Shown one piece after another: positions 25,184 through 53,500 of a stretch of DNA of 64,000 nucleotides (position 1 is its first letter; every line of letters begins with the position of its first letter). This DNA comes from Octopus bimaculoides (taxonomy: Eukaryota): assembly GCF_001194135.2 (NCBI RefSeq), contig NC_068993.1:53245564-53309563 (forward strand), in the 5' to 3' direction. A program made the position numbers and the translations under genes. Under the pieces are notes generated by a model. It searched no databases and was not told the origin of the DNA. It saw only the letters and a list, made by a program, of their open reading frames with translations.

Positions 25184-25192
25184 ATGATAAAA
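25184..25192 (+). CDS. Candidate first coding exon (ATG ATA AAA, MIK)
   Basis: gcgATGATAAAA|gtaagt; the phase-0 donor fits the next exon and supplies a start codon and basic n-region for the signal peptide. Only 9 coding nt, so uncertain. Confidence 0.5.
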
Positions 25193-28100: not shown

Positions 28101-31100
28101 GCGGTTAGCGCAGCGGACTCGCGGTCATAGGATTGCGGTTTCGATTCCCAGACCGGGCGTTGTGAGTGTTTATTGAGCGAAAACACCTAAAGCTCCACGA
28201 GACTCCGGCAGGGGATGGTGGCGAACCCTGCTGCATTCTTTCACCTCAACTTTCTCTCACTCTTACTTCCTGTTTCTGTTGTGCCTGTAATTCAAAGGGG
28301 CCAGCTTTGTCACACTGAATATCCCCGAGAACTACGTTAAGGGTACACGTGTCTGTGGAGTGCTCAGCCACTTGTACGTTAATTTCACGAGCAGGCTGTT
28401 CCGTTGATCGGATCAACTGGAACCCTCGACGTCGTAAGCGACGGAGTGCCAACAACAAGAATACATCCATATGATTCCTACTATTTCTAGCATGCGAAAA
28501 GACTGTGTATAGTATGGGTCACCAAACTACGGTCCGCGACGTCAATTTGTCCGGCCCGCTGTCGTATGCTGAAAAAAATAAACATGTTTCTTATACTTCT
28601 TAGATTACGCATGTCTTATGTATACTGAATCAGTCACGTCACGCGCTATGTATTTCACGCACCATAATAATTACCACAGTGCATCACATGTGCCTCGGGC
28701 TAGTCATGATATTAGTGATTACAATTAAAATGAGAATATCTGACGCCGAGGCCTAAGACTGCTTTTGTTTTTTCTTCACCCATCGTTATGGCTACTAAGA
28801 GGAGGAAAGTTGATGATGAATGTCGCATTTTCAATAAAGAATGGGGAGAAAAGTACTTCGGATCTTTCTGATTTGGCGGACACCATTTTTTATTTAGTTT
28901 TAATTTAGTGTGTTTTCTACCGAAACACTTTAAAACTTCGTATACTTGTATATTTTGTCTTATAGAACAGACATTTTTTTTTTTATATTCGAAGTTATTT
29001 CATGTTGAAAGTTGTCGTATTTCGGTAATTTCAACCAATCATTGACGCCTATTGAGGTGAAAACAATTACTGCTGTGGATTGTCAACAAGACGTTGTGGC
29101 GGTGTAATGGGATCTTTTTCCTTGAATAAAATTAGTGCCGTTGTTTGTCAACAACAACTATCGGCGGTACTGTTATTTATGACATCGTTCGTGCGTTTGT
29201 ACTGGTTTTAGCTTTAGGGTTTTAGGGTTAGGGTTCGGGTTAGGGATTTAGGGTTAGAGTTAGTGTTATGAGCACTATATGAAAAGGGGATAATTTCAAG
29301 AATCAAGAGTTTTTCCAAAGTCAGCATGATAATTGTCCTAACCTGTCTCCAGCATAAGACATTGGAACATAGATATGTATACACAGAAAAGCATAGAATA
29401 TATTTATGGCCTAAGTACTTTACATAAATTGAATGAAATGATTAAAAAATGGTTTACAAACTATTGTATTCAATATATGAATCTCTTTGCCTTAACCAAA
29501 TTCACACATTAATTATAAAATATTTTAGCCATAGAAACATTAGCTAGGACTAGTTGCACTTTGTCTATAATAGAGAATAGCCAACTTTATTTCTAATATT
29601 GTTTTAACATATCTATCCAATTAAACATAATCCATTTTAAACTGTAAATATTTTAAACTGTAAATATTTTAATCCAAAAGATTATTATTATTATTATTAT
29701 TGTTGTTGTTGTTGTTTTCCAGCCCAAATTACCCATTACAATTTGGATTTTGCTCTGTAATACTATTATTTCTACTTCTCAAATATGGTGAGTAGTTACT
29801 GTTATTATTATTATTATTATTATTACTATTATTATTATTGTTATTATTAAGGCGGCGAGCTGGCAGAATCGTTAGCACGCCGGGCGAAATGCTTAGCGGT
29901 ATTTCGTCTGCCGTTACGTTCTGAGTTCAAATTCCGCCAAGGTCAACTTTGCCTTTCATCCTTTCGGGGTCGATAAATTAAGTACCAGTTACGCACTGGG
30001 TCGATGTAATCGACTTAATCGCTCTGTCTGTCCTTGTTTGTCCCCTCTATGTTTAGCCCCTTGTGGGCAATAAAGAAATAGGTATTCTGTCTGTCACAAT
30101 AGACAAAATTCTGAGTTCAAATTCTGCCAGGGTTGAGTTTGTCTTTCATCCTTTCAGGGTCAATAAATTAAGTACCAGTGGAGTACTGGGGATCAATGTA
30201 ATTGACTGTCCCCCTCCCCACAAAATCTAGGCCTTCTGCCTATAGTAGGAATTATTATTATCATTATTATTGAGTGAGAGAGCAGTGCATGCCATCAAAG
30301 TGACACTGGAGTAAAATATACGAAGCCCAGTACACCCATCATGACTAACTGTCTGATAAGGGTACACCAGGCATATGCATCACAACCATATTATGTGCAC
30401 GACATGCTGATCTCATATCTAAAGGCGGTGCTCCAGCATGGCCACAGATGTGTGTGTGTGTGTGTTTCTCTGTGTGTATGGGTGCTTGTGTCTCATTTTC
30501 TTAATATTATGTGATAGCTGCATATCAGTGTCACTATCATGGAAGTGATGTCATTAGTCTGTTGTCATCATTGAATAGAAGTCCAGAGAAAGGGAGCCAT
30601 TTCCTTACATGGGAATAGGTGAAGATTGTTAACAGGCTGTAGAAACTCTGCTTTGACATCCATCTGACTCATGGAAAAGTTATAGTGGCGGCGGCGGTGG
30701 TGGTGGTGGTGAATATGACGATGATGATGTAGAAAGCAATGATATTTTTTAAAAGACACTGGTAAAGAAAGAATTTGGTGTAACTGAGTGTAATTGAATA
30801 CTTCAGGGTATGGTGTCTGCTGCTGCAATTTATGTTAACGGTGGTGTTTTCTTTTTTACAGGACTTACATAGACAAGCTTGGTCATGTTGAATACTGTTG
30901 TATTTGCCACAAAGATTTTGAGCAGAATGACATAATACATGAATGTTACTTAAAAAATAAAAAGGATGCTCGTCTGCCATTTTGCAATTGCTATAAAGGC
31001 ATACATCCAGGTATGTAAAATGTTTGTTTTGCGTTTTAACATCCTGTTACGAAAGGATTCTGACCACCCTCAAGTGACCAAAGGTGGACTGACTCATTAT

Positions 31101-32727
31101 TATAAAATGAAGAACTGTGAGCGTTTGGCAGTTCATGTTGGTAAGCAGTTCACTGTGTGTCTGTTGATATAGAGCGTTGAGTCTTGTGTAAAGCAATAGT
31201 TGTGCATCATGTGTACACTTTTCTTCCCTCTTGCTTCGTTATATTATATATCTAATACAAAGATATAAAACATCCTGAGCTGCTCTATCCAACATGATCT
31301 TTCTTTCACAAGTGTGTAACTTTTTCATTATTTTGAGTAGGTCTGGTCATCCCATAGATGTTCTCATATTAGCTTGAGTTAGTTGTTGTTCATTAGTCTC
31401 AAGTCATATGTGAGACGACTGTTGTTATCGTCAAGCCTAACTCATCGTAAGGTAAATACCACCATGACCGATATCCAAACTATAGTGGAAAAGGCTAGCC
31501 ACTGGATTTAGTTAAAAAAGAGACGATGAGCGATGGCTAGAGAAATATTGAGCTTTGTTTTTAATAACCAGTTGATCTAGCAAGCGGGGCCTCATATCAG
31601 TGAGGGTGGGGGGCGGTGCGCATTGATGCTGTCGAGAGGTAGGCCCTGAAACGACGCGCATTCTCTCCTGATGACCCCATACACTTGCTGGCTTCTGGTA
31701 TGCGGAGTTCTTGACTGGTAGCACTTGCATGTGCAAGTTGTTTGCAAGACATCTAAGACCTTGTTGTTTGCAAGACATCTAAGACCTTGTTGTTTGCAAG
31801 ACATCTAAGACCTTGTTGTTTGCAAGACATCTAAGACCTTGTTGTTTGCAAGACATCAGTTCTTAAGGCTGTGATCACTGTGTCCAGACTTATTCATTTC
31901 AGTAGGTACCTAGAACTACATTATTCAGTTTAATAAAAGTGTTTAGGTGTGATGTGAAGGAAATTTGGCTGTTATTTTTATTTGAACAAGCAACACTTTA
32001 GAAGTTCCCTCGTTAAGATATTTACATCCAATGGGCAACTAACTTCTACAACAGAGCATGATGTTTGTTCCCTATCCTATAGAACAGTATCAACACTGAT
32101 ACTTGCCCTCACCCCCACTCATTACAGCTACCACTGTGTGCCTCTGACCTCAAACTTTGTCCCTATATATTACTTTCTCCACCCCACCTCCCACCATACA
32201 AATTTATTATACTGCTGCAAAAATTTCTTTTGTAATTGTTTTCCAGATTTAGCTACAAGAACAAGATCACCAGCATAGAGAAATTACTTGGGACATCTGG
32301 TCTTAAGTATTTCTAACTAAATTAACACATCTGATGTGCATAGAAAACATATGGTCATAATTTAAAGATGCATTAGGTTTATGATATGCATAATAGAAAT
32401 TATTTAAAGAAGTAGAGATTAATGTTGAGGAAATTAATGGCAGAATTTTCTGTCTGTCTACTCATCTCTCAGTCTCTCTGTGTCTTTCAGTTTATCTCTT
32501 TCTCTCTCAGTCCCTTATTCTCTGTGTGTCTATGTATATATATATACATATATATATATTGACAAAAAAGGTCATCAAAATTTTGGAGAAAAAATCTTTT
32601 TATTTATTCATTTTTATTAGTGCTTCACCCCAAAAAACAAAAACAATGTTCTCCTCTTCTAACCCCCCCCCAAGCATCTGTTTTATATTGAATATCTGTA
32701 CACCACACCTAACACTCTCTCTCTATG

Positions 32728-32789
<62 letters not shown>

Positions 32790-35700
32790 CACACACACAA
32801 ACACACATACATGCACATGTATATTTTTGTTTCAGTGTGTCCAGGAAGTACAACTATTTGCAACAGAGAAGTAACATGTCCTGAAAGACGTGTCTATAAA
32901 GAATGTAAAGTGTCTCGTCTGAACAATGATAAATTGGTATGCAATGACAGTCTAGAATGGGAACCAAAGTTTGCATGTCCAGGTAAAAGAGATCTCAACA
33001 CATAATTATAATTGTTGTTGTTATTAATCTTTGCAATTTATTCTTGTTATTCTTTTTTGTCATTTTATAATATTGGAAATATTACAAAAGGGGAAAACAT
33101 ATAGGGAAGTGATCTGCCTGTTACATTGTACATTGCCATAGGTAGTCTTGAAGTCCATTGTATTCCAGTCTCGGCCAGTGGTTCTCAACCAGAGACCGTA
33201 TTGTCTTTGGGGGTCCATATCAGATTGTGTAGTAATAAAATCAATTATAATTGTTCAGTAGACAAAATATTTTGATAATTTTTTTTTATACAATTCCTAA
33301 TAATATTTAATTATAAAAAATATAAGATTTTTTTAAACACTGAATGGCTGATTGTCCAAAATAGGAATTAAAGGGGTCCTTAGACAAACAAACAAAAAGA
33401 ACACAACTCCAATAATGCACAGAGTCAATGACTATTGAAAAGGTTGCATGACGCAATGAAAATTTTAGTAAAAATAAATTAGTAAATCAAACCAGTGAGT
33501 GTGTTATATCAGACACTAAAAGAGAATGACTCTCTTCGGATACAATAAGATATTCATATAAATGTATGTATGTATATAAGTATGTATGAATGAATGCATG
33601 CTTGTCTATGAAAGTGTGTGCATATATTTCCTAAATGATGTTGACTATTTAAACTAAATGAATCTTTTCCACCCCTCCAGAGTGTACCAAAACTACTATC
33701 TACTGCAATAGAAGTGTAAACTGTAGTGAAACATTCATTGGCAGTGAGTGTATTTTACCATTTAACACCTCACAGAAATTGATATGTGGTGATGATCAAC
33801 AATGGAAAAGTGACTTTAAATGTCCTCCAGGTAATAATTTTATTGTATAGAATTGGTTTTTTTTTATTTATTTGATTGTTTTAATGGAATATGTCTCTAT
33901 TGAAAAAATTGATAATTAAGTGAAAATTAAATCTAATTTTTAATTTTTTTATTTTTCCTGGCGCCAACACTTCTTTTTATCAATTTTCCTTTTTCTTTCT
34001 TTTCTATCTGCCTTGTCTATTTTATGTGATATATGGATTATATATGTATATAATACAAGTATATATATAGCCTATGTAGGGTGTTTGAGCTAAATTTAGC
34101 CATTATTTTGTCTCTTATTTTCTGGAACTGCTCGATGTATTGTTAAACATTCAGTGTCATCGGAGAGCATGTAGGTTAATGTTGTTGCGAATAATTTAGC
34201 TGACATGGAGAACTGGGAGTCATCTCTATATTGGTATAGAGTTACTTGTATCATGATGACTTGCAAAGCAAGGATTAGAATCGAAGGGCCCTAGAGTCAA
34301 CTTAGCTAAAACCAAAGTCTTAATAAGTAGGAAGGTAGACAAATCACAAATCCCTTCAGGTAGATGGCCCTGCTTGATCTGTAGAAAAGGTGTAGTTAGA
34401 AACTCCATAACGTGTACCAAGGGTAAGCTATGCACACATAAGAGGTGCAGCAATATCAAAGGAAGGCTAACTGGGAAGATAGTTTTAGTATGTGGCAAAT
34501 GCTCAGGTGCTATAAACACTGAAAATGTGCAGAGAACAGCTTCTGTCACATTCCAGGGAGAAAAACTACAAGTAGTTGATAGCTTCCATTACCTAGGGGA
34601 CCAAGTCAGTAATGGGAGTGGGTGCTCTGAAAGTGTAGCTGCTAGAATAAGAATAGCCTGGGCAAAGTTCAGAGAGCTCTTACCTCTGCTGGTGACAAAG
34701 GGCCTCTCGCTCAGAGTAAAAGGTAGACTGTATGATGCATATGTATGAACAGCCATGCTACATGGCAGTGAAACATGGGTTGTGACTGCTGAGGACATAC
34801 GTAAGCTTGCAAGGAATGAAGCCAGTATGCTCTGCCAGATGTATAATGTCAGTGTGCATACACGACAGAGTGTAAGTGCCCTGAGAGAAAAGTTGGATTT
34901 AAGAAGCATCAGATGCAGTGTGCAAGAGAGACAGCTGTGCTGGTATGGTCATGTGTTGTGAATGAATGAGGACAGCTGTGTGAAAAAGTGTCACACCTTA
35001 GCAGTTGAGGGATCCTGTGGAAGAGGTAGACCCAGGAAGACCTGGGATGAGGTGGTGAAGCGCAACCTTCGAACATTAGGCCTCACCGAGGCAATGACTT
35101 GTGACCGAGACCTTTGGAAATATGCTGTGCGTGAGAAGAGCCGGCAAGTCAAGTGAGACCATAATCCAAGGCCTCTGCCAGGGGTGTAGCCAGCCCACTT
35201 ACGTGTAACATCCCTTCATTGGACACTAAACTCCACTTGCGAAGACCTGTTGAGGCAAGTGAAACCGAAATCGAACTAAATTTGATGACTGGCATCCATG
35301 CCAACGTCTCCTTCATTAGACACTAAACTCGGCTTGTGAAGACCTGTTGGGGCAAGTGAAAGCGAAATCATGATGGCACCTGTATCAGTGGAGCGCTAAG
35401 AGCACCGTCCAAGCGTGATCGTTGCCAGAGCAGCAGTCTGGCTTCCATGTCAGTGGCATGTAAATAGCACCATTTGAGCGTGATCATTACCAGCGTCGCC
35501 TTCCTGAAACTTGTGCCGGTGGCACATGAAAAGACATTAGAGCGAGGTCATTGCCAGTGCCACCGGACTGGCTCCTGTGCAGGAGGCACATAAAATACAC
35601 CATTTTGAGCATGGCCATTGCAAGTACCGCCTGACTGGCCTTCATGCTGGTGACACGTAAAAGCATCCACTACACTCTTGGAATGAATGGGGTAAGAAAG

Positions 35701-38522
35701 GGTATCCAGCTGTAGAAACTCTGCCAGATCAGATTGGAGCCTGGTGTAGCCATCTGGTTCGCCAGTCCTCAGTCAAATCATCCAACCCATGCTAGCATGG
35801 AAAGCAAATGTTAAACGATGATGATGTATGTATGTATGTATGCATGCATGCATGCACGTATATAAATATGTGTGCATGTATGTATTTCCTAAATGATGTT
35901 AACTATTTAAACTAAATGAATCTTTTCCACCCCTCCAGAGTGTACCAAAACTACTATCTACTGCAATAGAAGTATAAACTGTAGTGAAGCATTCATTGGC
36001 AGTGAGTGTATTTTACCATTTAACACCTCACAGAAATTGATATGTGGTGATGATCAACAATGGAAAAGTGACTTTAAATGTCCAGGTAATAATTTTATTG
36101 TGTAGAATTGTTTTTTATTTATTTGATTGTCTTAATGGAATATATCATTTTTGAAATAATTGATAATTAAGTGAAAATTGACCTGATCAAATCTGGAATT
36201 ATTTTGAATTTTTCCTGGTGCCAACACATCTTTTCATCAATTCTCTTTTTTCTTTCTTTTCTATCTGCCCTGTCTGTTTTATTTTTTTTGGAGCCTCTTT
36301 CTATATTTCTGCTGTGGTATATGGATTATATATATATATATATATAATACAAGTATATATAACCTATGTAGGGTATTTGGGCTAATTTAGCCATTATTTT
36401 GTCTCTTATTTTCTGGAACTGCTTGATGTATTGTTGAACAATCAATGTCATTGGAGAGCGTGTAGGTTAATGTCGTAGTTGCGAATAATTTAGCTGACAT
36501 GGAGAACTGGGAGTCATCTCTATATTGGTATAGAGTTACTTGTATCATGATGACTTGCATTTAGTATCAAAATGCTAACATGCTTTGAGAACACTCAATA
36601 CTTTGTGAACACTCAATGCTTTGTGAACACTAAAGAAGCTGTAAAATGTGACATGAATAGCTGCAACCAAGACTAGTCTGCTGTTTGCTAGCAGAAAAGT
36701 GACACAGCAAGCATTCTGAGTGTATTCAAACACCAAAATTCATCCAACAGCTCAAGGAAGAACAAGGTGCTAGAAGATGCAAGCAAGAGAATCTGGGCTT
36801 TGGCAAGAGATTTGGGTGTTGGGGTCACTACTATGAAGCTGGCCCTAAGTGAGGACCTTTTTTACTACTGGAAAAATACAACAAGACACAAAATCTGACA
36901 GTCTATGCTAAGCAGAACTGTTTGGCAAAGAACATAGAAGCTGATGGACAGGCTGAGCCACCCTGTTCATCCAGGGATAATCTAGTTCTTTTCAAATGAC
37001 CTGTGGCAGGACCAGTTGCACAACATCTGCGACAATGGGTGGTTTGCCTACAATCAAAAAACTAAAATTTTAACTTTATCCATGGATGGTATATGGTTTT
37101 ACTTGAATTTTTTTCATATCACTTTTGCTATTGCTGTGAGTTTAGTGTGTATCTTACTTAATTTTAATGAATAAGATGTTTTGAAATTTCTTAATGGTTT
37201 TTAATAGTTTTCAAACCTTTTAACATTTTATTCGATGCCTGACCCTAAAGGATTCATGTTATTCCATTGTTGTTGTACTATTATCATTGTTATTTTATAG
37301 GTGACTTAAATAAATCTAATCCTTGTTCCATTATTATTTTGTACTTAGCTCATGTTAGTTAACACAAGTTCCTGATAATTTAAGATAGTGTGATCTAATT
37401 AAATTAGTACATAATAATCATGTTCTCTATTAATAGTTTAGTTCACCATTATATTCTATGTTAATTCCAATCATTCATTTTATCAGTTTCTTACACCTTG
37501 ATGAGTCTATCATTATAAACCATGTAAATTCTATGTATCAATTCTGTACATTAGTTATAAAATAAATTTTATCTCTTATGTGTCCTTTAAATGATATTAG
37601 ATAAGTTTAATTTTTAAAAAAAATTTAGTCCAATATATATAAAACATTTTTAATTTCACATCTTATCTATGGTTCCTTATATTGGTGTAAATAAGTCTAA
37701 ATGTACTTTACCATAGCATTTTAAATTAATACCACTTCATGGTTTTTGCATACTGCATTGATTGACTAGTTACATTACTATACACTATTTCTTTTTATTT
37801 TTATTTCATTATTGATTTATAATTAGCTTTTGTTTATTCACATATTAATTAAGCAAATATTTGTATCTTAAGTTTTTCAAACTTAGCATATGTAAAACAA
37901 TACTGATACATTATTCTGATTAATGAAAACTATGAATAAACATTTACTGTATCTGTACACAATATAGCAACTTTATTTTATATACTTTTGACCTAGGTGC
38001 CTTATGGTAAAACTTCCCCTGCTCCATTATAAACTGGTCTGCTAGTAGAGAACCCCCCCCCACCTATAGTAGTTTGTCACTAAACCCAAAGAAATTTTAT
38101 AACCATATCATCCATGTATATTGTTTACCCCTTTCCCTTTCCCCATAAAGAAAATGCTAGTGCCCTCTTAAGCTTTGAATCACTAGGTCTGATAAGATGA
38201 TCCATAAATCAAAAAAAATAAATAAATAAATAAAAATAAAATCAGTGACAGTAAAAAATCTACTTAGAATTAATTACTAGCCTGTATGGTCTGGCTAAGT
38301 CAAAATGTTTTTTTTGTATTCTTCCTTTCTACTTGGAGAGTTTAAATGTAGTTACAAAAATATGTCCTGTTGAAATGAAATTTCAGTAAATTTCTATATC
38401 TTTGTGCAGCTGAGGATTGCTCTGCATTTTACATTTAATGTAATGTTCACATTGCTTAAATAAATGGAGTCGCATGAAAACGATCGTACTGCATTAACTT
38501 TGGATATCCTTGTTGCTTATTT

Positions 38523-38603
<81 letters not shown>

Positions 38604-41600
38604 TATGTATAGGCATATGTATGTATGCTTATTTTATACATATATTTATTGATATAAACACATTCATATAAATGTACGTATGTATGCATGCATTTATAAA
38701 TGTATATATGCATGTATATGAATATGTGTGCATGTATGTATTTCCTAAATGATGTTGACTATTTAAACTAAATGAATCTTTTCCACCCCTCCAGAGTGTA
38801 CCAAAACTACTATCTACTGCAATAGAAGTGTAAACTGTAGTGAAACATTCATTGGCAGTGAGTGTATTTTACCATTTAACACCTCACAGAAATTGATATG
38901 TGGTGATGATCAACAATGGAAAAGTGACTTTAAATGTCCAGGTAATAATTTTATTGTGTAGAATTGTTTTTTATTGATTTGATTGTCTTAATAGAATGTC
39001 TTTATTGAAATAATTGATAAATAAGTGAAAATTGATGTAATCAAATCTGAGGTTTTTGAAAAAATTTGCCTGGTGCCAACACATCTTTTTATCAATTCTC
39101 TTTTTCATTTCTCATCAATCTGTCTTGTCAATTTTTTTTGGTGCTTCTTTCTCTATGTGTATTTTGGTATATTGTTTATATATTTATAAAGAAAATGTTG
39201 ATAAAGGACCACCACTTTAGTGAAAGTGTTCATTGAGATGTCCTGTAAGTGAGCTTTTAAGAAGTGTGCGTAATGAAAATATCAGAAGGCATTTTTATAT
39301 AAAATATTTTAATTTATTAAAAGATAATGAGTGCTGACAAGTAATATGAGTGTAGCCGGCGTATGTGCATGAATCAGAAAAAGGTTTATAACTTACATTG
39401 GAAAAATGGATTCAGTTGGAAGTTGTTTTAAGCAAACAAAAATGGTGCTAGTGTAAACAAACATATACTGATCATAATATAGACAGAGTTGTGGGCTGAT
39501 GTTATTCAGGATTTGGCATGAATGAAATAGGCTGTTCATAATGTGGGTTGAGTTGAGGGCTGATATAATTCAGAGCTAGCAGTGCAAAGTTGGTGACAAG
39601 AACAAAGGGGCTGTTCCTATGCTTAGCAGCCAATGTTGCTGGTTTGTTGTCTTTTTGCTAACTGGTCCAAACACCCACTTAACTCTTCTCGGTCAGAGAA
39701 CTACCTTTGGCATTAATATGTGCTCAGCTCTGATTGGCTGGAGTTGCTATTGCAGAACTATGCAACAATGTGATAACAAAAATAGCTTTTCTGACTTGCA
39801 ACAGTACCCTTCACTGACACTACAGATTGATACAAGCAACAGTAATGCAGCAAAATAAAAAAATAAAAACAGTGTGAAATGTTCAAACAAGGTAAATGCA
39901 TCAGGAAAAGAAATATTACAAATACAATAAAAGGCAAATATACAAAAATGAGAAGACGACAGTCATTTAGTGCAAGTTCATATATATATAGTCTTGCAAA
40001 GTCTCATGGGCCTATGGACGTGACAGCCTCTACAAGTTGTCATTCCATGTATTGGTGGAGGTGGGGAAGATGTGTGTGGAGTGGTGTGTGTAGAGGGTGT
40101 ATGAGGTTTCTAGGTATGAGCATCTGTATAGGCTCTTTTAAGTCTATCAACAGAGAAAGTGTCTCTGGAACCACTGCAGTCAATGGTGAAATGTTTGTTA
40201 GAATGAGAAAGAACACGATAAGGTCCTGAGTAAGGTTGGATGAGAGGACTTCTCATGGTGTTGTTTCTGATGAAAACGTGGGTCCATGAGGCCATGTCCC
40301 TCAGGACTGCAGGTTTCACAGTTTGATGCTTGGTGCTCATTGGCAGCAGGTCTTCAAGGTATGTATGGAGGCGGTTCACATAAAAAGGATCTTGAGTCAA
40401 TAGATCTACTGGGGCAAGCATCTGCCTTGGTAAAGACAATGGAATGCTGAACAGCAGCTTGGCTGGGGTGTATCCAAGTCCTTCTTTGAACAAAGTTCGA
40501 ATGCCAAGGATTACTATTGGGAAGTACTCGATCCAGCTATGATTATCAGGATAAGCACAAAAATGTATATATACATTTGTAAGTATGTGTGTATTTGAAT
40601 GGGTGTGTGTGTATATATGTATTTTCTGATTGAAGGTAGCTATTTATTGTAAATTAATTTTCTTCTACCCCTCCAGAGTGTCCCAACATTACTTCTGTCT
40701 GCAATAGAAGAGTAAACTGTAGTGAAACATTCATTGGCACTGAGTGTATTTTACCATTTAACACCTCACAGAAATTGATATGTGGTGATGATCAACAATG
40801 GAAAAGTGACTTTAAATGTCTTCCAGGTAATAATTTTATTGTATAGAATTGTTTTTTTTTTATTTATTTGATTGTTTTAATGGAATATGTCTCTATTGAA
40901 ATAATTGATAATTAAGTGAAAATTGGTGTAATCAAATCCAAAGATATTTTTGAATTTTGCTTCATGCCAACACATCCTTATATCAATTCTTTTTATCCTT
41001 TCTCTTCAGTCTGCCTTGTCAGTTTTTTTGGTGCCTCTTTCTCTATGTGTTTTTTGGTATATAGATTATATATGTATACTAGCAGAGATATCCAGCATAG
41101 CACAAGATTAAAATGGTATAGTTTGTATACATATATTACAGTTATGTTGAAACAGGTGATACAGGAAAGTGCAGCATTGATGACAAAATATTTGTGGAGT
41201 AAATGATGGTCTAACTTAGTGACATGTTATACATCAAGCCCTAACCTATCATGGACAATTGGGAGTTGTAGGGAGGCATGTAATTTTTGAACCTACTACA
41301 GAGCTGTCAGTGGATATACATGCCGTGGAGGTGGTCAGTACTGCGTGTCATCGTATAATTGACAGTCAAATGAATGGGAGTGTAATGGAGATATTGTATG
41401 TAAATGGGTACATTCTGGAAATGGGCTGCAATAGAAGATAACAACAGGGATGTGAACTGTTGAAATGATGCAGAAGGTGAAGTGTTGACATTGGATTGCT
41501 GGTGTGGTTGTAGAATAAGAAACATAAAGTGAGCCTATGCAGTCATATGAGAATATGTAGCAATGAATTACTTGAACAAATAAGGCTTAATGGCTTCCCG

Positions 41601-42014
41601 CATAGTATGTATATAGTATGTGTGTATTTTTGTATGCAGTGTAAATTGACGAAATATAAGAAAATGAACAAAATAGAAGCACATGTATGAAAATGCTAAT
41701 TTAACGGTAAATACCACAATAATTATTACAGAGAAACAAAGAATTATATATATATATAGGATAAATTTCATAATGTAAGTGTAAATATGCAATTGTAAAT
41801 ATCTTGCAAACTTGCAACTGCTGTGCTAATTATTAACTGATAATAGAACAGTAAATGTGTATTTTAATATATACCTTGTATATTTTATATGTATATTTTA
41901 ATATATACCTTGGACCTTGCTACCTCAGTGGTTTTTTTTCAAGAGTCTCACTTCTAGCACTCACATACATACATTCAGGCATGTCAGTCATCACATATGT
42001 ATATGTATGTGTAG

Positions 42015-42054
<40 letters not shown>

Positions 42055-45000
42055 AATAATGCACTTAACGTGGAAACACACAGGCTCACAGCTACTCACA
42101 CTCGTACACTCACAGACAGATACATACTCATATACAAAATGTGACATTGTGTTATAAAATGTTCCTGATATACACTCAAATACATATACTAAGTTAGTCA
42201 CACAGGGACATACATTCATGCATGTCAGTTGTTACATATGCATATGTATGTGTACATGTGTGTATGTTTAATAATGTACCTGACATGGAAAGACGTCATA
42301 TACAAAATGTGATTATTTGCATTATTTACATTGGATGGCTATGTGTCCTAGAAGTAGCTGATAGCTTCCGCTACCTAGGTGACCGAGTTTGTAGTGGGGG
42401 AGGGTGTGCTGAAAGTGTAGCTTCTAGAATAAGAATAGCCTGGGCAAAGTTTAGAGAGTTGGACGATTTGACTGAGGACTGGTGAAACCGGATGGCAACA
42501 CCAGCCTCCAATCTGATTTGGCAGAGTTTCTACAGCTGGATGCCCTTCCTAACACCAACCACTCAGAGAGTGTAGTGGGTGCTTTTATGTGTCACTCGCA
42601 TGAAGGCCAGTCAGGCGGTACTGGCAACGGCCACGCTCAAAATGGTGTATTTTATGTGCCACCCACACAGGAGCCAGTCCAGGGGCACTGGCAACGATCT
42701 CGCTTGAAAATCCTATGAAGGCCAGTCAGGCGGTACTGGCAACNNNNNNNNNNNNNNNNNNNNNNNNNNNNNNNNNNNNNNNNNNNNNNNNNNNNNNNNN
42801 NNNNNNNNNNNNNNNNNNNNNNNNNNNNNNNNNNNNNNNNNNNNNNNNNNNNNNNNNNNNNNNNNNNNNNNNNNNNNNNNNNNNNNNNNNNNNNNNNNNN
42901 NNNNNNNNNNNNNNNNNNNNNNNNNNNNNNNNNNNNNNNNNNNNNNNNNNNNNNNNNNNNNNNNNNNNNNNNNNNNNNNNNNNNNNNNNNNNNNNNNNNN
43001 NNNNNNNNNNNNNNNNNNNNNNNNNNNNNNNNNNNNNNNNNNNNNNNNNNNNNNNNNNNNNNNNNNNNNNNNNNNNNNNNNNNNNNNNNNNNNNNNNNNN
43101 NNNNNNNNNNNNNNNNNNNNNNNNNNNNNNNNNNNNNNNNNNNNNNNNNNNNNNNNNNNNNNNNNNNNNNNNNNNNNNNNNNNNNNNNNNNNNNNNNNNN
43201 NNNNNNNNNNNNNNNNNNNNNNNNNNNNNNNNNNNNNNNNNNNNNNNNNNNNNNNNNNNNNNNNNNNNNNNNNNNNNNNNNNNNNNNNNNNNNNNNNNNN
43301 NNNNNNNNNNNNNNNNNNNNNNNNNNNNNNNNNNNNNNNNNNNNNNNNNNNNNNNNNNNNNNNNNNNNNNNNNNNNNNNNNNNNNNNNNNNNNNNNNNNN
43401 NNNNNNNNNNNNNNNNNNNNNNNNNNNNNNNNNNNNNNNNNNNNNNNNNNNNNNNNNNNNNNNNNNNNNNNNNNNNNNNNNNNNNNNNNNNNNNNNNNNN
43501 NNNNNNNNNNNACATATTGCTATTTTATAACTGCCAGCAATTTCTTCATCACAAATTGCCGTCCTAGCTCCTGCGAAAAGGGATTACTCTGCTATGTATA
43601 ATCAGGGCAGCGCAAAAAGTTGTTTTGCACAAGCATTTCTATAGCCAATTAGATGGAGGAAATTTACGTACGCTTAATAATGTTACGCAAAACAGCCTTC
43701 AGACTTTCCCTATTAATTTCATTGTCTTTTGAATTATGAACATATTTACATCATAAGGGTTTTTTTGTTGTAAGGCTTTCTTTTTTAGTTGATTTTCACC
43801 TAGCAAGACTTATCATAGATGGCGTAATAAGTCACAGCCAGACAAGGTCGGGTTATACAGCTAGTATATATATATATATATATGAGGTTGGGATGATAAG
43901 TTCATAGGCTGACTATGAAGGAGTGATGCTAGTTCTGTGAAATCTTGCTTGCATTAATTTCAACAACTGGTATTAATATTTTGTATTTAAATGTAGTATT
44001 CATGCACAGTTTTCAGAACATTAACTTATTGCTTCATTTTAGTTTCAGATCCTGGAAGTCTTGCAATTTTGGGGTATATCTTCCCTCCTATTATTATTAT
44101 TATTATTATTATTATTGCAGGTTTGTCAATTTTTTTTTCTAATAATAACCATAAAAATCTTATAAATCCAGTGTCAGACCTTAGAATTTTCTTAACCTCT
44201 CATCACTCAGCTTCATTTATTTCCATAGTTTTTACATCTGTAATTCCAAACTCAAGGTTTACTGAAACATTGAACTGACGTCCAATTTGAATTTTACCTT
44301 TTTTTTTTGTCATCTATAATCACATTGTACTGATTTTTAGCNNNNNNNNNNTTACCCACCATCACACACATAGACCATTTACTGCAGCAGATTCAAAGCA
44401 ACAATATTTCACAAATAAATCTTAACCTTATTAATCCTTTATTTTCATTGTTTTTTTTTACATTCATTGCCCCGTTTTGGTTACCCCATTATCCCCTCAT
44501 TTTTCTTCAATGCTTCCTGGATCTTACCACTGCACCCAGTGGGGTGGTACCACCCACTTTGGGAACCACTGGTTTAATTTTTTGCACACTTGAGATATTC
44601 TTCCTACTATTAACCATCCAGTCATGGAAGATGTGTGGAATTGTTTTGGAAGCCAGACAAATCATGACCAACAGTTTGGTCTGTTTAAGATACAACACAA
44701 TGGCTCTAGCAGTTATGTCTGAACTCATAATCATGTAGCTGGTATTCCAGTAGTTTCACTCACATGACCATTATATTTCTATAAGTTGATATCTAATCAC
44801 TATTGACTTTTATTTATTTTTCAATGATTATCATGAAGCATAGGTACGGAATTTATATATATATATATTTCTTAAACAAAAATATTATTGATAATGACTT
44901 TGAATTTTCAGCTAGCTAAGCCTTTCTCAGTCTGCAATGCCTTGAAGTTCATTTTGGCTTCATATAGTTCATTGTGGCTACAATAGAATTGAACTCAAAA

Positions 45001-46447: not shown

Positions 46448-49400
46448 NNNNNNNNNNNNNNNNNNNNNNNNNNNNNNNNNNNNNNNNNNNNNNNNNNNNN
46501 NNNNNNNNNNNNNNNNNNNNNNNNNNNNNNNNNNNNNNNNNNNNNNNNNNNNNNNNNNNNNNNNNNNNNNNNNNNNNNNNNNNNNNNNNNNNNNNNNNNN
46601 NNNNNNNNNNNNNNNNNNNNNNNNNNNNTGACACAAATGAAATTTAAATGTTGAAGCGAAACTAATGGTTTGTGAGTGTTCTTGAATGGCTTACAAATAC
46701 AGGGGTTGGACAAAATAATGGAAACACCTTAAAATTTCAAACAAATTTATTTCAATAAGGGGTAGGACCACCTTTGGCAGTAATTACAGCTTGAATTCTA
46801 TGAGGTATTGACTCGTACAAAGTTTGAATTGTTTCCAAAGGAATTTTTGTCCATTCTTCAGCTAAAACAGTCTCCAGTTCTTGTAGTGATGATGGTGGAG
46901 GACATTGACTCCTTACTTGTTTTTCTAAAATGCACCATAAATGTTCAATAATATTGAGATCTGGGGACTGTGGTGGCCATATAAGATGTTCAACTTCACT
47001 AGAATGTTCCTCATGCCATTCAGTAACAACTTTAAGCTGTGTGAATTGGCTCATTATTATCTAGAAAGATTGTGTTTACCTCTGGGAACAGTTCTGCAAC
47101 CATAGGATGAATTTGATTAGATAAAATGCTTAAATAGTCTTGACTACTATTTCTGTGGATCTTGCCCTGACCGCAGCATCCAGAACATGAGAAGAATCAA
47201 AGGAATCACTAACTGTGACATCCCAGACAAGGCATCTGCCTTTCAATCAGGGACACAAGGAGAGGCCGTTGGGTCTTTTCCCATCATATCTGAAGTACCA
47301 CAATCTGTTGGCCAACTACATTTTCCATTCTGTGGTGTTTGAGACGTTTGGTGGGGTCAGACCAGTGACTTCCAGATTCCTGTCTTCACTGGCTGCTCGC
47401 CTAGCAGAGGTAACTGGCAAAGCTTGTGAGGGTGCTTGGTTGTCCCAGTGCATCAGCCTTGCCATCACCTGCAGCAATGCTGCAAGCATGCTGGTGTACC
47501 TCAAAAGCCATCAGGGAGGTTTCCCAATGCCCTCAAATTTTCTACTTGTTCGAGTAATATGATACTATAACAGTTTATTATTGAGTTAGCAAAGCTATTG
47601 TTCACAAAGGAGCGAGAAAAACACAAATAGCAAAGAAAATATAAAATAATTTGCACAAAACACACACACATATATATGTACAGACACACACATACACGCA
47701 TACATATATGATAGCCTTTTTTGGTTTACATCTGCCAAATCCACTCACAAATCTTTCATCGGCCCATGGCTGAACTAGAAGACACTTGCTCATGGTGGCA
47801 CACAGTGGGATTGAACCCAAAACTAAGTGGTTGGTAAATATATAGTAAAATAACACCCACATTGTATTCTATATTATACTATATATTTCATTGTTTATTG
47901 TATTATTGTTTTATATCTTTTCTAAGGTTCAGTATTTTGCTTTGTATCTCGAAGAAACAAAGGACAAGCTCCTAGAGATAATGGACAAGGTGAGAGTGGA
48001 TGTTTAATTGGATTTATGTGATTTTTGTTCTCTTAACTGTTATATTTTATTTTTTTAATAACAGTTTCAGCCTCTACTTCAGTAGATTTATGATCAAAGA
48101 TATTCCTGCCAAGCTTACCTTGTCTTTTATTCACATACTATATATCTGAGGCAACATATACTATGTGTTTTGCCACTTTCTGAAGAAAATATGGCATAAT
48201 CAGAAGCAGATTTGGCTGCTACTTCTTGCAGGTGGAGAAACACTATAGAGGCTAATATATTGTCCTGCATATAGTATGTTTGTGTATGCACACTAAGTGT
48301 ATGACAGTGTTGTATGAGCTTGCTCTATATTTTGGGCTTAGCTGCTCGAAATCATTCTCACATGGCCTCACTGAGTAGATGACAATGAACCAAAATGTCT
48401 AATGATATGAGGTTCTTGAGAAGACTAGCTCACCTCAGTGAAACTGAGTTTTGATAAACCCATAATATCATTATCTACTCATAGATTATATAGCTGGTGT
48501 ACTGCCTTAACCTTACTTATTATTATAAATCGTGGATAGATAAGTATATATGTATATTTATGTATTTATAATCACTGACTCTCAATAGGGTAGTATATCA
48601 ATTTAGTAAATTTTTGTTGTCTTTAGCATTCTCTTTATTTATTTATCCCTCACACATTGTCAACTCTACAATAGTATTCATGCATAAATGTCCTTATTTC
48701 ATAGTATTCATGCATACACCCAAAGAAAATTGATAGACAAAGTTTTGCAATAGAAGTTCTTGTCCCCCATAAATTGAGTTCTAGAGAGAAAATCCAAATT
48801 TCATAGTCAAAGTGTGTAAAAAATAGGTGTGAGAACAAATGGGGATAAGAAGATATTTTATATGGTGAAATTATCTGTTATTAGGTTTAATCAAAAAGTG
48901 TATGACTTGAAGTCTAGACAATAAGTCTGATGAGTATAAAAGGAAGAAACCTCTAAAAAGGCCAAGGTATCTTAATATCTGATTTATAAGAGTGAGCACA
49001 GTTAGAAATTCTTTTGTAGTGATGCACAAAAATGTCAGTTTGCAGGGCAGATAAGTTCATCATCAAAATATAACGCCCCATCCTAAATCTGCTTCATTCT
49101 TTGCATTCATTGCCCTTGCATCAAAACCATAGTGATATCCATTTGGCAGCTGATGGTGGGAATATACTTATGTTTTGCTTGATTTTGAATTTCTTATATC
49201 TTAGTTTCATCATTTTACGTTGTCCTTCATTCTTGTAAAGTGGAAAGTGTTTGTGGATTCAAAGTTAGATTGGTATTGGTTGGTTTTCCTTCATAGGTAA
49301 TTTTTTAGGCTTAGATAACGTCTTCATTGAACACTAGACTCGGCTTGCGAAGACCTGTTGTGGCAAGCGAAAGTGAAATCGTGATGGCACCAGTACCAGT

Positions 49401-50473
49401 ACCAGTAAATCATTAAGAGCACCGTCCGAGCGTGACCGTTACCAACGTCGCCTTCCTGGCACTTGAAAAGACATTCGAGCGAGTTCGTTGCCAGTACTGC
49501 TGGACTGGCTCCTGTGCAAGTGGCACGTAAAATACACAATTTCAAGCGTGGCCGTTGCCAGTACCGCCTGCCTGGCCTTCGTGCGGGTGACACGTAAAAG
49601 CACCCACTACACTCTCGGAGTGGTTGGCATTAGGAAGGGCATCCAGCTGTAGAAACTCTGCCAAATCAGATTGGAGCCTGGAGTAGCTATCTGGTTCACC
49701 AGTCCTCAGTCAAATTGTCCAACCCATGCTAGCATGGAAAGCAGATGTTAAACGATGATGATGATGATAATGATGATGATGATATGTGTAGAGGGACTGA
49801 ACCAGAAGCTATGTGGTTGGTAGTAAAATCATGTCCACATTCTATCTTACATTTTACTGTATATATACTTGTTTATTTTATTACTTTTGTATATTTTTTC
49901 TTAGATACTCAGGAAAGAGAACTTCTAACATCTAAAAATCAGGACACACAACCAAATGAAAATATTGAAGGTGAGAGAGAAAATGATAGAAATGATAGCA
50001 AAAATCCTGAACATGGGGACTGCATTTATTTTCATTTTTTAATCTCAATGTGTGCCTGTACTTCTTTCTATCTTGTCTTATAATGGGACTGTATATGTTT
50101 CATTGTCATATGCTATGTGTTCTGTAAATTTCTGAAGAGAATAGAGTATGATTAGAAGTAGGTTTGACTGCTACTTCAAGTAGGTGGAGAAATTCTAGAG
50201 AGGTTCATATATTACCTTGTTTATAACGTGTGTGTGTTTGTGTGTATTTCTAAATAAGGTAATATTTTTGAAGGTGTGCAAAATGGAGAACAAGGCACAT
50301 ATCAACACAATATAAATCAAGAAGGTATGTATTCTTCAAATTTAGGAAGAAAATAATATATGATTGGAGGTAGACTTGGCTTCTATTTTTCACAAGTAGA
50401 GAAATCCTAAAAAGATTAATGTATAGACTTGCTTATGAGTGTGTGTGTGTGTGTGTATGTTTGTGTGTGTGTT

Positions 50474-50504
<31 letters not shown>

Positions 50505-53500
50505 GTATTTTTGTGTGCATGTGCATGTGTGTGTGTGCATGTATATATGTGTGTATGTGTGTGTGAGTATAACTGATTTTCTTTTTGAGATGACTACACA
50601 CTACATGTCTTACTTTGAAGCAATGGAAGTGAGTGAGAATGTTATAACTTAGTGTACATGAATGACAGAGTTGACAGTCAATCTCTGCCAAGCAGCTTCA
50701 CTCTACATACTTTAGCTCTGCTACGATAACAACAGTCCTGATACTCTTTCATCAGAAATCGTATATACGTATATGATAAGCATTGTTCAGTTTCCATCTT
50801 CCAAACGCACTGGCTATGCTTACCCTAGAAGACCCTTCTTACGCTGGCACTCAGAGGGACTGAATCAGAAGCTATGTGGCTGGTAGTAAAATCATGTCCA
50901 CATACTATCTTACATTTTACTGTATATATACTTGTTTATTTTATTATTTTTGTATATTTTTTCTTAGGACCTGAAGAAGAAACATGTCCAATGCTTGAAG
51001 ATGTGGAAAATAGAGAACAAAGCACAGAGCAAAAAAATATAAATCAAGAAGGTATGTATTCTTCAAATTCAGGAAGAAAATAATATATGATTAGAGGTAG
51101 ACTTGGTTTCTATTTTTCACAAGTAGAGAAATCCTAAAAAGATTAATGTATAGACTTGTTTATGAGTGTGTGTGTGTATTTGTGTGTGTATGTAGGTGTT
51201 AGAATATTTATAAATAATGTAATAATCTCCCTGTAATNNNNNNNNNNNNNNNNNNNNNNNNNNNNNNNNNNNNNNNNNNNNNNNNNNNNNNNNNNNNNNN
51301 NNNNNNNNNNNNNNNNNNNNNNNNNNNNNNNNNNNNNNNNNNNNNNNNNNNNNNNNNNNNNNNNNNNNNNNNNNNNNNNNNNNNNNNNNNNNNNNNNNNN
51401 NNNNNNNNNNNNNNNNNNNNNNNNNNNNNNNNNNNNNNNNNNNNNNNNNNNNNNNNNNNNNNNNNNNNNNNNNNNNNNNNNNNNNNNNNNNNNNNNNNNN
51501 NNNNNNNNNNNNNNNNNNNNNNNNNNNNNNNNNNNNNNNNNNNNNNNNNNNNNNNNNNNNNNNNNNNNNNNNNNNNNNNNNNNNNNNNNNNNNNNNNNNN
51601 NNNNNNNNNNNNNNNNNNNNNNNNNNNNNNNNNNNNNNNNNNNNNNNNNNNNNNNNNNNNNNNNNNNNNNNNNNNNNNNNNNNNNNNNNNNNNNNNNNNN
51701 NNNNNNNNNNNNNNNNNNNNNNNNNNNNNNNNNNNNNNNNNNATATATATATATCCATATATACATATATATATATACATATACACACTCATGCATATAT
51801 ATGCAGGTATGTATGTATATATATGCATATATGTATGTATATGTATAAAAATATACATATGATGAGTGTTGTTATAGCATGAGTTCCTCTGTAAGTTGGA
51901 ACATCACGGGGACTGATTGGGTATCTATGTAATAATAGAATATATCATAGTATAATATGCATATTGTATCTTAGATTTTAGTACATATGTTGCTGTTCAG
52001 TTCCTTATTTTTGTATATTTCTTGCTATATATTTTGGACTTAGCTGCTCGAAATCATTCTCTCAGGGCCTCACTGAGTAGATGACAATGAACCAAGATGT
52101 CTAATGATATGAGGTTCTTGAGAAGACTAGCTCACCTCAGTGAAACTGAGTTTTGATAAACCCATAATATCATTATCTACTCATAGATGATGATTGGTGT
52201 CTAACTCTGAGAGGGTCTGTGGATTACAAAAGTGATCATGTGAACCAGCCCAACTTGCTGTGTATTTATTTGGGAGTTTTCAGAATCAATCAGCAGATTA
52301 CTTTTCACAGAATTCTGAGGAATCATGTTGAATATGTGTTATAAAAGAAGCCATACATAGCTCATGAAAATTAATCAATAATTGTTAGAATGGTTTCAAC
52401 ATTATACAAAATTGATTATACTGAATAATGGTGAAACTATTGTAAATGACATATTAAAATGATTTCCTTACTCGATTCATCAATATTTGTCATTATATAT
52501 AATATGTGTGTTTGTGTATGTATCTTTTCTATTGCTTATTTCAGTCATTTGACTGTAGCCATGCTGGAGCACCCCAACCGCACCCCCTTGAAGAGATTTA
52601 GTCGAATGAATAAACCCTAATATATTTTTTTAAAGCCTGGTACTTATTCTTTCTTTCTTTGTTGCCAAACTGCAAAGTTATGGAGATGTACTCACCAACA
52701 CCAGTTGTCAAGTGGTGGTGATGGTGGGGACAAACACAAACACACATACACACACATAGGCTTGACAACTAATGTTCGTGTGCTTATGTCCCTGTAACTT
52801 AGTGGTTCGGCAAAAGAAACCAATAGAATAAGTACTAGGCTTACAAAGAATAAGTCTTGGAGTGGGGAGGGACGATTTGTTTGACTAAAGGTGGTGCTCC
52901 AGCATGGCTACAGACAAATGACTGAAACAAGTAAAAGAATATATATATATGTGTGATTTTATTAACTCTGATGAGAGAAATATAGAGTATTGCTATGGTT
53001 GGAGTTAGCTCGCCTATAGCAACTATATCTTTTCGAAACAGCCGTTAGACTTTATACATAAACTTTATACATGTTCCTGACTCTTTATGAATCATTTTAC
53101 ATCTGCTTTATCTTCCTCCTCATTCCGACTTCGCAAGTACATTTAAGGACTTACACTTTTTATCTATTTATATTGATGAATTTTTATGTGTTTTATAAAT
53201 TTTTATATGTGTATAAATTTTCGTGTATATGTATGTATTTATAGATTCTTAGAAATTTTTATGTCATATAGATGAATGCAACTATGTATGTAATTTGTAT
53301 ACCATGGAGAAATTCGTTAATATGGAATGAATGAATATATACATCGGCCTTTGAATTTGTCTTCTCCTCTCCTTAATTCATCATCATCATCATCATCATC
53401 ATCGTTTAACGTCCGCTTTCCANNNNNNNNNNNNNNNNNNNNNNNNNNNNNNNNNNNNNNNNNNNNNNNNNNNNNNNNNNNNNNNNNNNNNNNNNNNNNN

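Follow-up and report, generated by a model that had tools for sequence, protein, structure and literature searches.

Abalone VERL carries tandem extracellular repeats under concerted evolution, with the end repeats escaping homogenisation, and in polyubiquitin and human genes of the CR1/apo(a) type intragenic concerted evolution proceeds through unequal crossover and conversion, with variable copy number. The repeat arrays of sea-star bindin are a further case of concerted evolution of tandem extracellular repeats (PMC4063459). In the fungal HNWD genes (het-d/het-e), the WD40 repeats combine concerted evolution with diversifying selection at four surface positions, and this positive selection was shown statistically and mapped to the interaction surface (PMC1805685).

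The locus described here lies in a 64,000-nucleotide stretch of Octopus bimaculoides DNA (the window). We predict a gene encoding a signal peptide, a Cys-rich N-terminal domain and five 49-aa six-cysteine modules, the last four of which, A-D, are its exons 5-8 (Table 1). An earlier note on this DNA had read A-D as recent duplicates diversified by selection. Our analysis makes it highly probable that they are old tandem copies kept alike by conversion, and that the pattern in which every altered codon changes the protein reflects a conversion boundary together with small counts.

As in VERL and bindin, the coding repeats are closer to one another within a species than orthologous repeats are across species, the end units (here D and the first module, module 0) are incompletely homogenised, and the protein is fast-evolving and would be extracellular. 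Unlike in those arrays, the octopus repeats are separate phase-1/1 exons with introns of ~2-3 kb and tracts spanning the exon plus ~60-90 nt, and in neither sequence nor fold is the module related to ZP-N or bindin repeats. Synonymous differences common to all units within a species recall polyubiquitin, CR1 and apo(a). However, ubiquitin units stand head-to-tail in a single exon under extreme protein constraint, the long homologous repeats of CR1 cover several CCP exons, and the octopus module belongs to none of the CCP, kringle or ubiquitin domain types.

Table 1. Features of the predicted gene and its surroundings (window positions)
Feature	Position	Strand	Evidence or remark
Start-codon exon, ATGATAAAA then gtaagt, M-I-K	25184..25192	+	collinear with annotated start of O. 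sinensis LOC115229376 (L001:10001)
Signal-peptide exon	29723..29787	+	tblastn with P0001; AG/GT borders
Cys-rich N-terminal domain exon	30862..31010	+	86-88% aa identity to O. sinensis P0001; AG/GT borders
Module 0 exon, phase 1/1	32836..32982	+	tblastn E=1.6e-10; splice sites read
Upstream proximal intron of A, co-homogenised with C	33625..33680	+	
Module exon A, 150 nt	33681..33830	+	flank orthologue O. sinensis S1 (L001:30478-30624)
Upstream proximal intron of B, co-homogenised likewise	35883..35938	+	
Module exon B, 147 nt	35939..36085	+	chimeric flanks: upstream C/S2-like, downstream A/S1-like
Upstream proximal intron of C, co-homogenised likewise	38739..38794	+	
Module exon C, 147 nt	38795..38941	+	flank orthologue O. 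sinensis S2 (L002:9930-10076)
Module exon D, 150 nt, terminal module	40677..40826	+	orthologue O. sinensis S3 (L002:12414-12563)
First ~90 nt of intron after D	40827..40919	+	2/93 differences from intron after A; absent from O. sinensis S3
Stretch orthologous to S3 exon extension (VVKIDPSKSK) and intron	40920..41750	+	blastn 88.8% to L002:12566-13400
Homologue of O. sinensis tail exon ARRSRTPSATSNGR	47948..47989	+	donor kept; acceptor AG changed to AT
51-nt candidate exon, phase 1/1	50274..50324	+	homologous to O. sinensis 22-aa tail-repeat exons
Second 51-nt tail-repeat candidate exon	51001..51051	+	

The predicted spliced open reading frame is uninterrupted over 321 aa, with AG/GT at all exons. 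Module 0, overlooked in the earlier note, is a divergent fifth six-Cys copy with ~37% aa identity to A and 84% to the first module of P0001, and the N-terminal domain exon has a dN/dS of 0.63 against O. sinensis. Downstream of D, a hydropathy scan returned T-rich intron translations and microsatellite artefacts alone and no convincing transmembrane (TM) exon, and the S3-type donor within the stretch orthologous to the S3 extension reads AAAG/AT and is thus unusable here. The window holds no further family gene outside 30.8-41 kb; a weak module-like match at 24646-24764 has a frame broken by stops and was set aside as chance.

The gene belongs to a family that, to judge from database matches, is restricted to cephalopods and unnamed. 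A family HMM search returned 11 proteins at E<=1e-3, of which 8 are named cephalopod proteins (Octopus, Argonauta, Sepia); of the remaining 3, two are unnamed Logan fragments and one, P0011 (E=4e-6), is a weak match from outside the family. Members are O. sinensis LOC115229376/"ribosome-binding protein 1-like" (P0001 and P0002), O. bimaculoides LOC106874402, O. vulgaris CAI9732128-31, Argonauta hians GAB1601623 and Sepia pharaonis CAE1153323, and a literature search with the LOC identifiers found nothing on this family. The family signature, all of which is present in the window ORF, is a signal peptide followed by a W-x-Y-x3-G-x3-CC-x-C...PFC N-terminal domain and at least one six-Cys module, whose pattern C-x6-C-x5-C-x8-C-x11-C-x5-W-x5-C is common to family members. 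Module number varies from 1 to 5, and modules of the A-D type (type 2) were seen in the window species and O. sinensis only. Taken together, P0001 and P0002 correspond collinearly to the window gene as its orthologue. Public models of this O. sinensis orthologue are fragmentary, one being split over two scaffolds and two ending by reading into an intron, and the comparison shows that they are pieces of one gene. The O. vulgaris P0004 locus, considered as a third orthologous array, is a paralogue with module-0-type repeats only.

Searches for known domains in the modules and six family members gave nothing credible in Pfam above threshold. A Sushi/CCP domain was taken to have ~60 aa, four Cys paired 1-3 and 2-4, and the CCP beta-sandwich fold; the Sushi/CCP profile (PF00084) matched neither the modules at E<=10 nor the six family members at E<=1, and there was no CCP structure among the 50 best Foldseek matches listed. 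By eye only, the C-terminal C...C..W..C spacing of the module is CCP-like. CIMIP3 is an intracellular axonemal protein. Its Pfam entry (PF22581) was the sole match above cut-off, and we rejected it: the 36 bits are the sum of four ~9-bit matches of 23 aa in an artificial four-module concatenate, and native P0001 reaches 13.8 bits (E=0.056), below the cut-off of 27. An AF2 model of a single module (pLDDT 87.5) is all-beta, and Foldseek with this model and with the whole P0001 model found no match at E<=0.001. The best Foldseek matches were pacifastin-like, with probabilities of at most 0.3; the top one, the pacifastin-type six-Cys inhibitor 2xtt_A (E=1.0, probability 0.30, TM 0.41/0.52), was likewise rejected, its Cys spacing being different. 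A PDB sequence profile search yielded chance Chk1 matches only (E ~1), and a 50-column module alignment had no match in a 5.8-billion-sequence protein database, for which size the query is too short.

All four exons A-D are of phase 1/1, with AG at the acceptor and GT at the donor, and the differences that the earlier note had listed among them hold. A equals C apart from one CCT codon missing in C; B differs from C only by GTA>ATA (V>I) and ACA>GCA (T>A) and lacks the CCT codon as well; relative to A, D carries 11 nt changes spread over 8 codons (T>P, K>N, T>I, I>S, Y>V, S>R, S>T, P>L). The core from GAGTGT to AAATGT shows 0/81 differences among the four copies, and the six Cys and the Trp are retained throughout. 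Replacements concentrate toward the N-terminus, in codons 3-22. The module is rich in N-glycosylation sites, and the sequons in its first beta-hairpin (codons 3-22) turn over between copies. Two of the statements made about these exons stand only in part. No codon as listed is purely synonymous, but Nei-Gojobori paths give the multi-hit codons of D about one synonymous-equivalent step (Sd=1, Nd=10); and the introns are more diverged beyond ~60 nt upstream and 40-90 nt downstream, but the proximal intron is co-homogenised.

To date the array, we compared the flanks of its units with those of the one other species with type-2 modules, O. sinensis, in which the array lies on two scaffolds with at least three copies. 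Orthologous flanks are 7-9% diverged, as against 20-30% between paralogous flanks. In the downstream far flank, D and S3 differ at 12/163 sites and C and S2 at 15/161, whereas paralogues differ at 30-40/160; C and A differ at 30/131 in the downstream flank. Upstream, the near flank gives 4/61 for D-S3 against 16/60 for D-A, and the far flank 14/79 for A-S1 against 34/80 for A-C. Collinear blastn of the window with the O. sinensis units gives 87-92% identity. Because orthologous flanks are far closer than paralogous ones, A, C and D are older than the divergence from O. sinensis; by this flank comparison the three units were already present in the common ancestor, and the description of them as recently duplicated is refuted. 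The repeated unit is only 470-750 bp long at 82-89% identity, and the units are separated by spacers of TE or microsatellite DNA that share no homology. Homology between A and B reaches 34265/36559, an extension not found in C or D. An origin of B by recent C x A unequal crossover would fit its chimeric flanks, but these flanks are 16-34% diverged from their partners and such recency is unsupported. An assembly artefact, in which the collapse or duplication of reads multiplied one exon into spurious copies, has next to no probability: A and C are 100% identical save for one codon, but flanks, spacers, TE insertions and microsatellites differ from copy to copy, and three copies have separate orthologues in the independent O. 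sinensis assembly.

Within the exons the relationship is reversed. Over exon nt 67-150 the window copies show 0-1 differences among themselves versus 5-8 to each O. sinensis copy. All window copies differ from all O. sinensis copies at three synonymous sites, codons 30 (ACC/ACT), 31 (TCA/TCT) and 34 (TTG/TTA), and codon 44 (S/T) is fixed differently in the two species. Identity runs extend over 78-198 nt (permutation P<=1e-4): A and C are identical over 198 nt beginning 57 nt upstream of the exon, the B-C run of 130 nt ends at +38, and in the upstream near intron A, B and C differ by 1-3/60. These shared species-specific exon states, combined with 1:1 orthology of the flanks, argue for concerted evolution by short-tract gene conversion, and the homogenisation of the core proposed in the earlier note is borne out. 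We infer the mechanism, conversion as against unequal crossover. It is very improbable that the exons were instead held by extreme nucleotide-level purifying selection on protein and splicing enhancers while the introns drifted. Identity is indeed highest on the exons, and the two species conserve the Cys, the Trp and the C-terminal two-thirds; however, codons 30, 31 and 34 would each need three or four parallel changes without exchange, identity continues past the exons, for 57 nt of the upstream intron and 38-93 nt of the downstream one, and the protein changes fast between species (omega 0.38-0.65), which is incompatible with frozen synonymous sites. Very strong nucleotide-level constraint could add to exon identity.

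The boundaries of the tracts can be read in D, which resembles S3 up to about exon nt 64 and A from there on. Its residues P3, N4 and S7 are those of S3, its variable positions 5, 8 and 12 are shared or paralleled in S3, and altogether 5-6 of its 8 differences are shared or paralleled in this orthologue; Ile13 of B (ATA13) is the state of O. sinensis S1 and S2, and just three substitutions occur in the window alone. We propose that near-identity is upheld by continuing intragenic gene conversion or unequal exchange in short, exon-centred tracts, reaching from ~60 nt upstream to 40-90 nt downstream. The latest tracts would have rendered A and C identical and replaced the 3' two-thirds of D, the terminal unit, by A/B/C sequence. 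The end of the exon and the start of the intron would have been swapped between A and D; the start of the intron after D, together with the extra CCT/CTT codon, appears to mark this tract, although these 89 nt of intron after D may be either ancestral or a gain through conversion. The 5' third of D would have lain outside the tract and retained ancestral terminal-module residues also present in S3, and B would have retained one ancestral residue, Ile13. Thus the clustered all-replacement differences mark a conversion boundary over a module with a replacement-tolerant first beta-hairpin (omega ~1) and constraint on the remainder (omega ~0.5).

Does selection also diversify this hairpin? Between A and D the excess of replacements is non-significant (Fisher p=0.35); the earlier note had cautioned that the counts were small. 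In simulations, 13 random substitutions were all replacements with P=0.03-0.09, before post-hoc choice and shared ancestry are allowed for. Between species, dN/dS is 0.38-0.54 for the modules and 0.65 for exon 2 plus module 0, values that by the earlier note's own rule (refuted if not above 1) count against its selection reading. Among seven copies from the two species, events numbered 22N:4S in codons 1-22 and 8N:3S in codons 23-50; omega is ~1.3 in codons 1-22 (binomial p=0.42 versus neutrality) and ~0.55 in the rest, and replacement density is higher in the N-terminal third (p=2e-4). The N-terminal third is a genuine replacement hot spot, and statistically it cannot be told from neutral evolution. 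Diversifying selection is not demonstrated, and an omega of ~1.3 with seven sequences leaves room for some.

Very recent tandem duplication, with selection diversifying an exposed face of a recognition receptor, is, on these data, improbable. It would account for the fact that all 10 altered codons change the protein and cluster in codons 3-22, for the omega of ~1.3 in codons 1-22, and for the three or four residues found at each of positions 3, 5, 8, 12, 19 and 29 in the seven copies. The paralogues also resemble type I membrane proteins, and recognition repeats with concerted evolution plus positive selection are known (PMC1805685; PMC4063459). Against it stand the age of A, C and D, the differences of D, most of them inherited states common to S3, and the non-significant N:S excess with between-species dN/dS of 0.38-0.65. 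HNWD is the scenario of the earlier note, exchange homogenising the repeats while variability is kept at few positions per repeat; unlike in HNWD, the octopus data are seven repeats from two species, with exchange within one gene and a variable third whose omega does not depart from neutrality.

By analogy with HNWD and VERL, there is a small chance that the hairpin of codons 3-22 is the surface that determines specificity in an extracellular recognition family confined to cephalopods and shaped by both conversion and diversifying selection. Exon-centred conversion would then homogenise the scaffold and shuffle hairpin variants among modules and alleles, in the style of those systems, and diversifying selection would lie below detection with seven sequences. 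In a lesser variant, the equal-phase exons may be used combinatorially or mutually exclusively. Exons A-D share phase and near-equal length, which is compatible with mutually exclusive (Dscam-like) use, but the annotated O. sinensis models splice consecutive modules together (module 0 and S1 in P0001, S2 and S3 in P0002). The window gene product is probably an extracellular glycoprotein, either anchored or secreted. Several paralogues have a TM helix and a low-complexity or cytoplasmic tail, whereas the hydropathy scan found no convincing TM exon for the window gene; by analogy with these paralogues, a receptor is a plausible guess.

With old copies kept alike by conversion as the preferred reading, the locus is a clean, small case of exon-centred concerted evolution, in which the intron flanks preserve the true history and conversion tracts can therefore be read to tens of bases. 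It illustrates how the edge of a conversion tract can be mistaken for diversifying selection acting on one face of a module. It also documents an unnamed, apparently cephalopod-restricted family of six-cysteine modules with no relative found in Pfam or PDB. If positive selection on the N-terminal hairpin proved true, this family would be a candidate lineage-specific recognition system of cephalopods.

The four near-identical six-cysteine module exons reported in the earlier note (A, B, C and D) lie exactly at the coordinates claimed, all on the plus strand, in AT-rich animal DNA with many microsatellites. Their borders are the same in all four (...ccctccAG on the 5′ side and GTaataat on the 3′ side). 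The differences between the copies had also been read correctly: one CCT codon is the sole difference between A and C, V13I and T18A are the sole differences between B and C, and 11 nt in 8 codons separate D from A. The core from GAGTGT to AAATGT does not vary among A–D, and every copy retains the six Cys and the Trp. A fifth, divergent module exon (module 0) was absent from the earlier exon list; it shares 84% identity with the first module of the O. sinensis protein P0001 (LOC115229376) and takes no part in the homogenisation of A–D.

Exons of the O. bimaculoides window and module exons of O. sinensis (L001, scaffold VCDQ01002432; L002, CM016871)
Feature	Position	Strand	Remarks
ATG exon	25184-25192	+	mapped from octopus proteins
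Signal-peptide exon	29723-29787	+	mapped from octopus proteins
N-terminal Cys-rich domain exon	30862-31010	+	upstream of module 0, A, B, C, D
Module 0 exon	32836-32982	+	147 nt, phase 1/1; 37% aa identity to A-D
Module exon A	33681-33830	+	150 nt, phase 1/1
Module exon B	35939-36085	+	147 nt, phase 1/1
Module exon C	38795-38941	+	147 nt, phase 1/1
Module exon D	40677-40826	+	150 nt, phase 1/1
Tail exon homologue	47948-47989	+	next after D; acceptor AG replaced by AT
Tail-repeat exon candidate	50274-50324	+	51 nt; homology to O. sinensis tail exons
Tail-repeat exon candidate	51001-51051	+	51 nt; homology to O. sinensis tail exons
S1	L001:30478-30624		O. sinensis type-2 module
S2	L002:9930-10076		O. 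sinensis type-2 module
S3	L002:12414-12563		O. sinensis type-2 module

The window is collinear with O. sinensis loci, and its unique non-coding DNA is 87–92% identical to theirs. At least three modules of the A–D type (type 2) are present in O. sinensis, in an array divided between an unplaced scaffold and a chromosome. We aligned the seven units (A–D and S1–S3) and measured flank distances segment by segment. In the downstream far flank, D–S3 and C–S2 differ at 12/163 and 15/161 positions, compared with 30–40/160 for paralogous pairs; the upstream near flank gave 4/61 for D–S3 versus 16/60 for the paralogous D–A, and the upstream far flank 14/79 for A–S1 versus 34/80 for the paralogous A–C. 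The flanks of A, C and D are in 1:1 orthology with those of S1, S2 and S3, respectively. The repeated unit is only 470–750 bp long, units are 82–89% identical to one another, and the spacers between them are unrelated TE or microsatellite DNA. A, C and D therefore predate the split of the two species, and their description as recently duplicated was wrong. The flanks of B, which are not young by their segment distances, are chimeric (C/S2-like upstream, A/S1-like downstream), the arrangement expected from unequal crossover.

The O. sinensis scaffold ends in 53 nt (L001:36604-36656) that match window 33218-33270, directly upstream of unit A, and this match hints at a further unit after S1 in the unassembled gap; the same segment has another copy at L001:27810-27989. 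Interspersed repeats that recur many times in the O. sinensis and O. bimaculoides loci lie within the spacers (34266-35826, 42348-42708); 35541-35786 matches 42458-42704 in inverted orientation (88%), and 34566-34676 matches 42348-42458 in direct orientation (86%). At the upstream edges of the repeat units, and in the tail region, there are long microsatellites of the types (TA)n, (TATG)n and (TG)n (32700-32800, 38489-38660, 50420-50560), and inter-unit homology begins right after them.

Over exon nt 67–150, A–D show 0–1 differing sites among themselves and 5–8 versus each of S1, S2 and S3. Four codons are species-fixed, each state occurring in every copy from one species and in no copy from the other: codon 30 (ACC in the window, ACT/AGT in O. 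sinensis), codon 31 (TCA, TCT), codon 34 (TTG, TTA) and codon 44 (AGT, ACT); three of these four differences are synonymous. Identity also extends beyond the exons: A and C are identical over 198 nt, from 57 nt upstream of the exon, and B and C over 130 nt, to 38 nt inside the downstream intron (permutation P≤1e-4 for the identity runs), and A and D differ at only 2/93 positions of the intron start. The extra CCT/CTT codon is common to A and D only. Purifying selection can account for neither the shared synonymous states nor the intronic identity. The exon identity is the product of concerted evolution, whether through short-tract gene conversion or through unequal exchange, and its most recent events long postdate the separation of the two species. 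Homogenisation of a structural core, as proposed earlier, stands on the species-fixed synonymous codons and the intronic identity runs, with gene conversion as its mechanism.

The replacement differences have a largely older origin. Pro3, Asn4 and Ser7 of D are the same as in S3, and D and S3 both depart from the A type at positions 5, 8 and 12; S22T and P49L are the only changes private to D. The 5′ third of D lies outside the conversion tract; terminal repeats of concerted arrays usually escape homogenisation (PMC4063459). Ile13 of B (ATA) is also found in S1 and S2, and A and C share GTA with D/S3, so the B codon is probably a retained ancestral one; only T18A is private to B. Since most differences of D and B are shared with O. 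sinensis copies, the 13 differences come down to about three recent, independent substitutions, the rest being paralogue differences that were inherited. N-glycosylation sequons at module codons 3–5, 10–12, 14–16 and 29–31 turn over fast between copies and species (NRS, NCS and NTS in A/B/C; NIT, NCS and NTS in D; one each in S1 and S2, three in S3), and several hypervariable positions make or break them.

Diversifying selection, which the earlier note had read from the lack of purely synonymous changes, is not upheld on present evidence. For the pair of A and D, the Nei-Gojobori method gave Sd=1 on 27.5 sites and Nd=10 on 122.5 sites (dN/dS 2.3, Fisher p=0.35). When 13 random substitutions were simulated on exon A, 3–9% of trials, depending on kappa, had no purely synonymous codon, a figure that precedes correction for post-hoc choice and non-independence. 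Between species, the three pairs of orthologous modules had dN/dS of 0.38–0.54, and exon 3 together with module 0 had 0.65. A minimum-event count across all seven modules gives 22 replacement and 4 silent changes for codons 1–22 (omega about 1.3, p=0.42 when tested against neutrality) and 8 and 3 for codons 23–50 (omega about 0.55). The two parts differ in replacement density (p=2e-4) but not in silent density. The N-terminal third is indeed the variable part, and relaxed constraint and selection fit its variability equally well.

Protein searches matched octopus proteins only: P0001, P0002 (O. sinensis "ribosome-binding protein 1-like") and P0003 (O. bimaculoides LOC106874402). Mapping these back onto the window gave a plus-strand gene model with AG/GT borders on every exon and a spliced frame without a stop over 321 codons. 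P0001 and P0002 are two pieces of one gene, cut by an assembly break (L001 end/L002 start). P0001, P0003, P0005 and P0009 all end by read-through of a module-exon donor into the intron (GNNFIV*, GKRNLN...), and these public models are therefore truncated or intron-retaining.

In an exhaustive HMM search, 11 proteins reached E≤1e-3: eight named proteins from cephalopods (Octopus vulgaris, O. sinensis, O. bimaculoides, Argonauta hians, Sepia pharaonis), two unnamed Logan fragments, and P0011, a weak match (E=4e-6) outside the family. In several paralogues the modules are followed by a TM helix and a cytoplasmic tail of low complexity. The module has the pattern C-x6-C-x5-C-x8-C-x11-C-x5-W-x5-C, and each copy carries two or three N-x-S/T sequons; AlphaFold models the module as a small all-beta unit (pLDDT 87.5) with hairpins at residues 4–13 and 22–35 and a short strand at 41–43. 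Because no credible Pfam domain occurs in any family member, the module profile has no PDB match and the modelled module no significant Foldseek relative, it is an unnamed six-cysteine module restricted to the cephalopod lineage. CIMIP3, the sole Pfam match above cut-off, was rejected as the sum of four ~9-bit matches in an artificial concatenate. In O. vulgaris, the paralogue CAI9732128 (P0004) covers 88 kb of a 108-kb locus (OX597826); a tblastn scan of this locus found three module-0-type and zero A–D-type modules, and the protein itself carries four. CAI9732129-31, with consecutive accession numbers on the same contig, appear to form a tandem cluster of family members with it.

At the 3′ end, S3 is missing the first 89 nt of its intron, and reading continues as ...CPPVVKIDPSKSK up to a new donor; D keeps the standard donor and has AAAG|AT at the S3-type donor. 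The S3 extension VVKIDPSKSK runs to a GT donor (comparison of L002:12563-12600 with window 40827-40960), and the sequence coding for it is homologous to intron in all other units. O. sinensis tail exons are recognisable in the window in strongly diverged form, and the repeat exons of 22 aa are shortened here to 17 aa; neither later tail exons nor a convincing TM exon candidate for the gene were found in the window.

The observation on the four exons is confirmed, and the homogenisation part of its interpretation stands. The A–D array adds a new case of a process that is well known, in a cephalopod-specific family of modules that is uncharacterised; it is of use for annotation and as a caution, and no surprise to the specialist.
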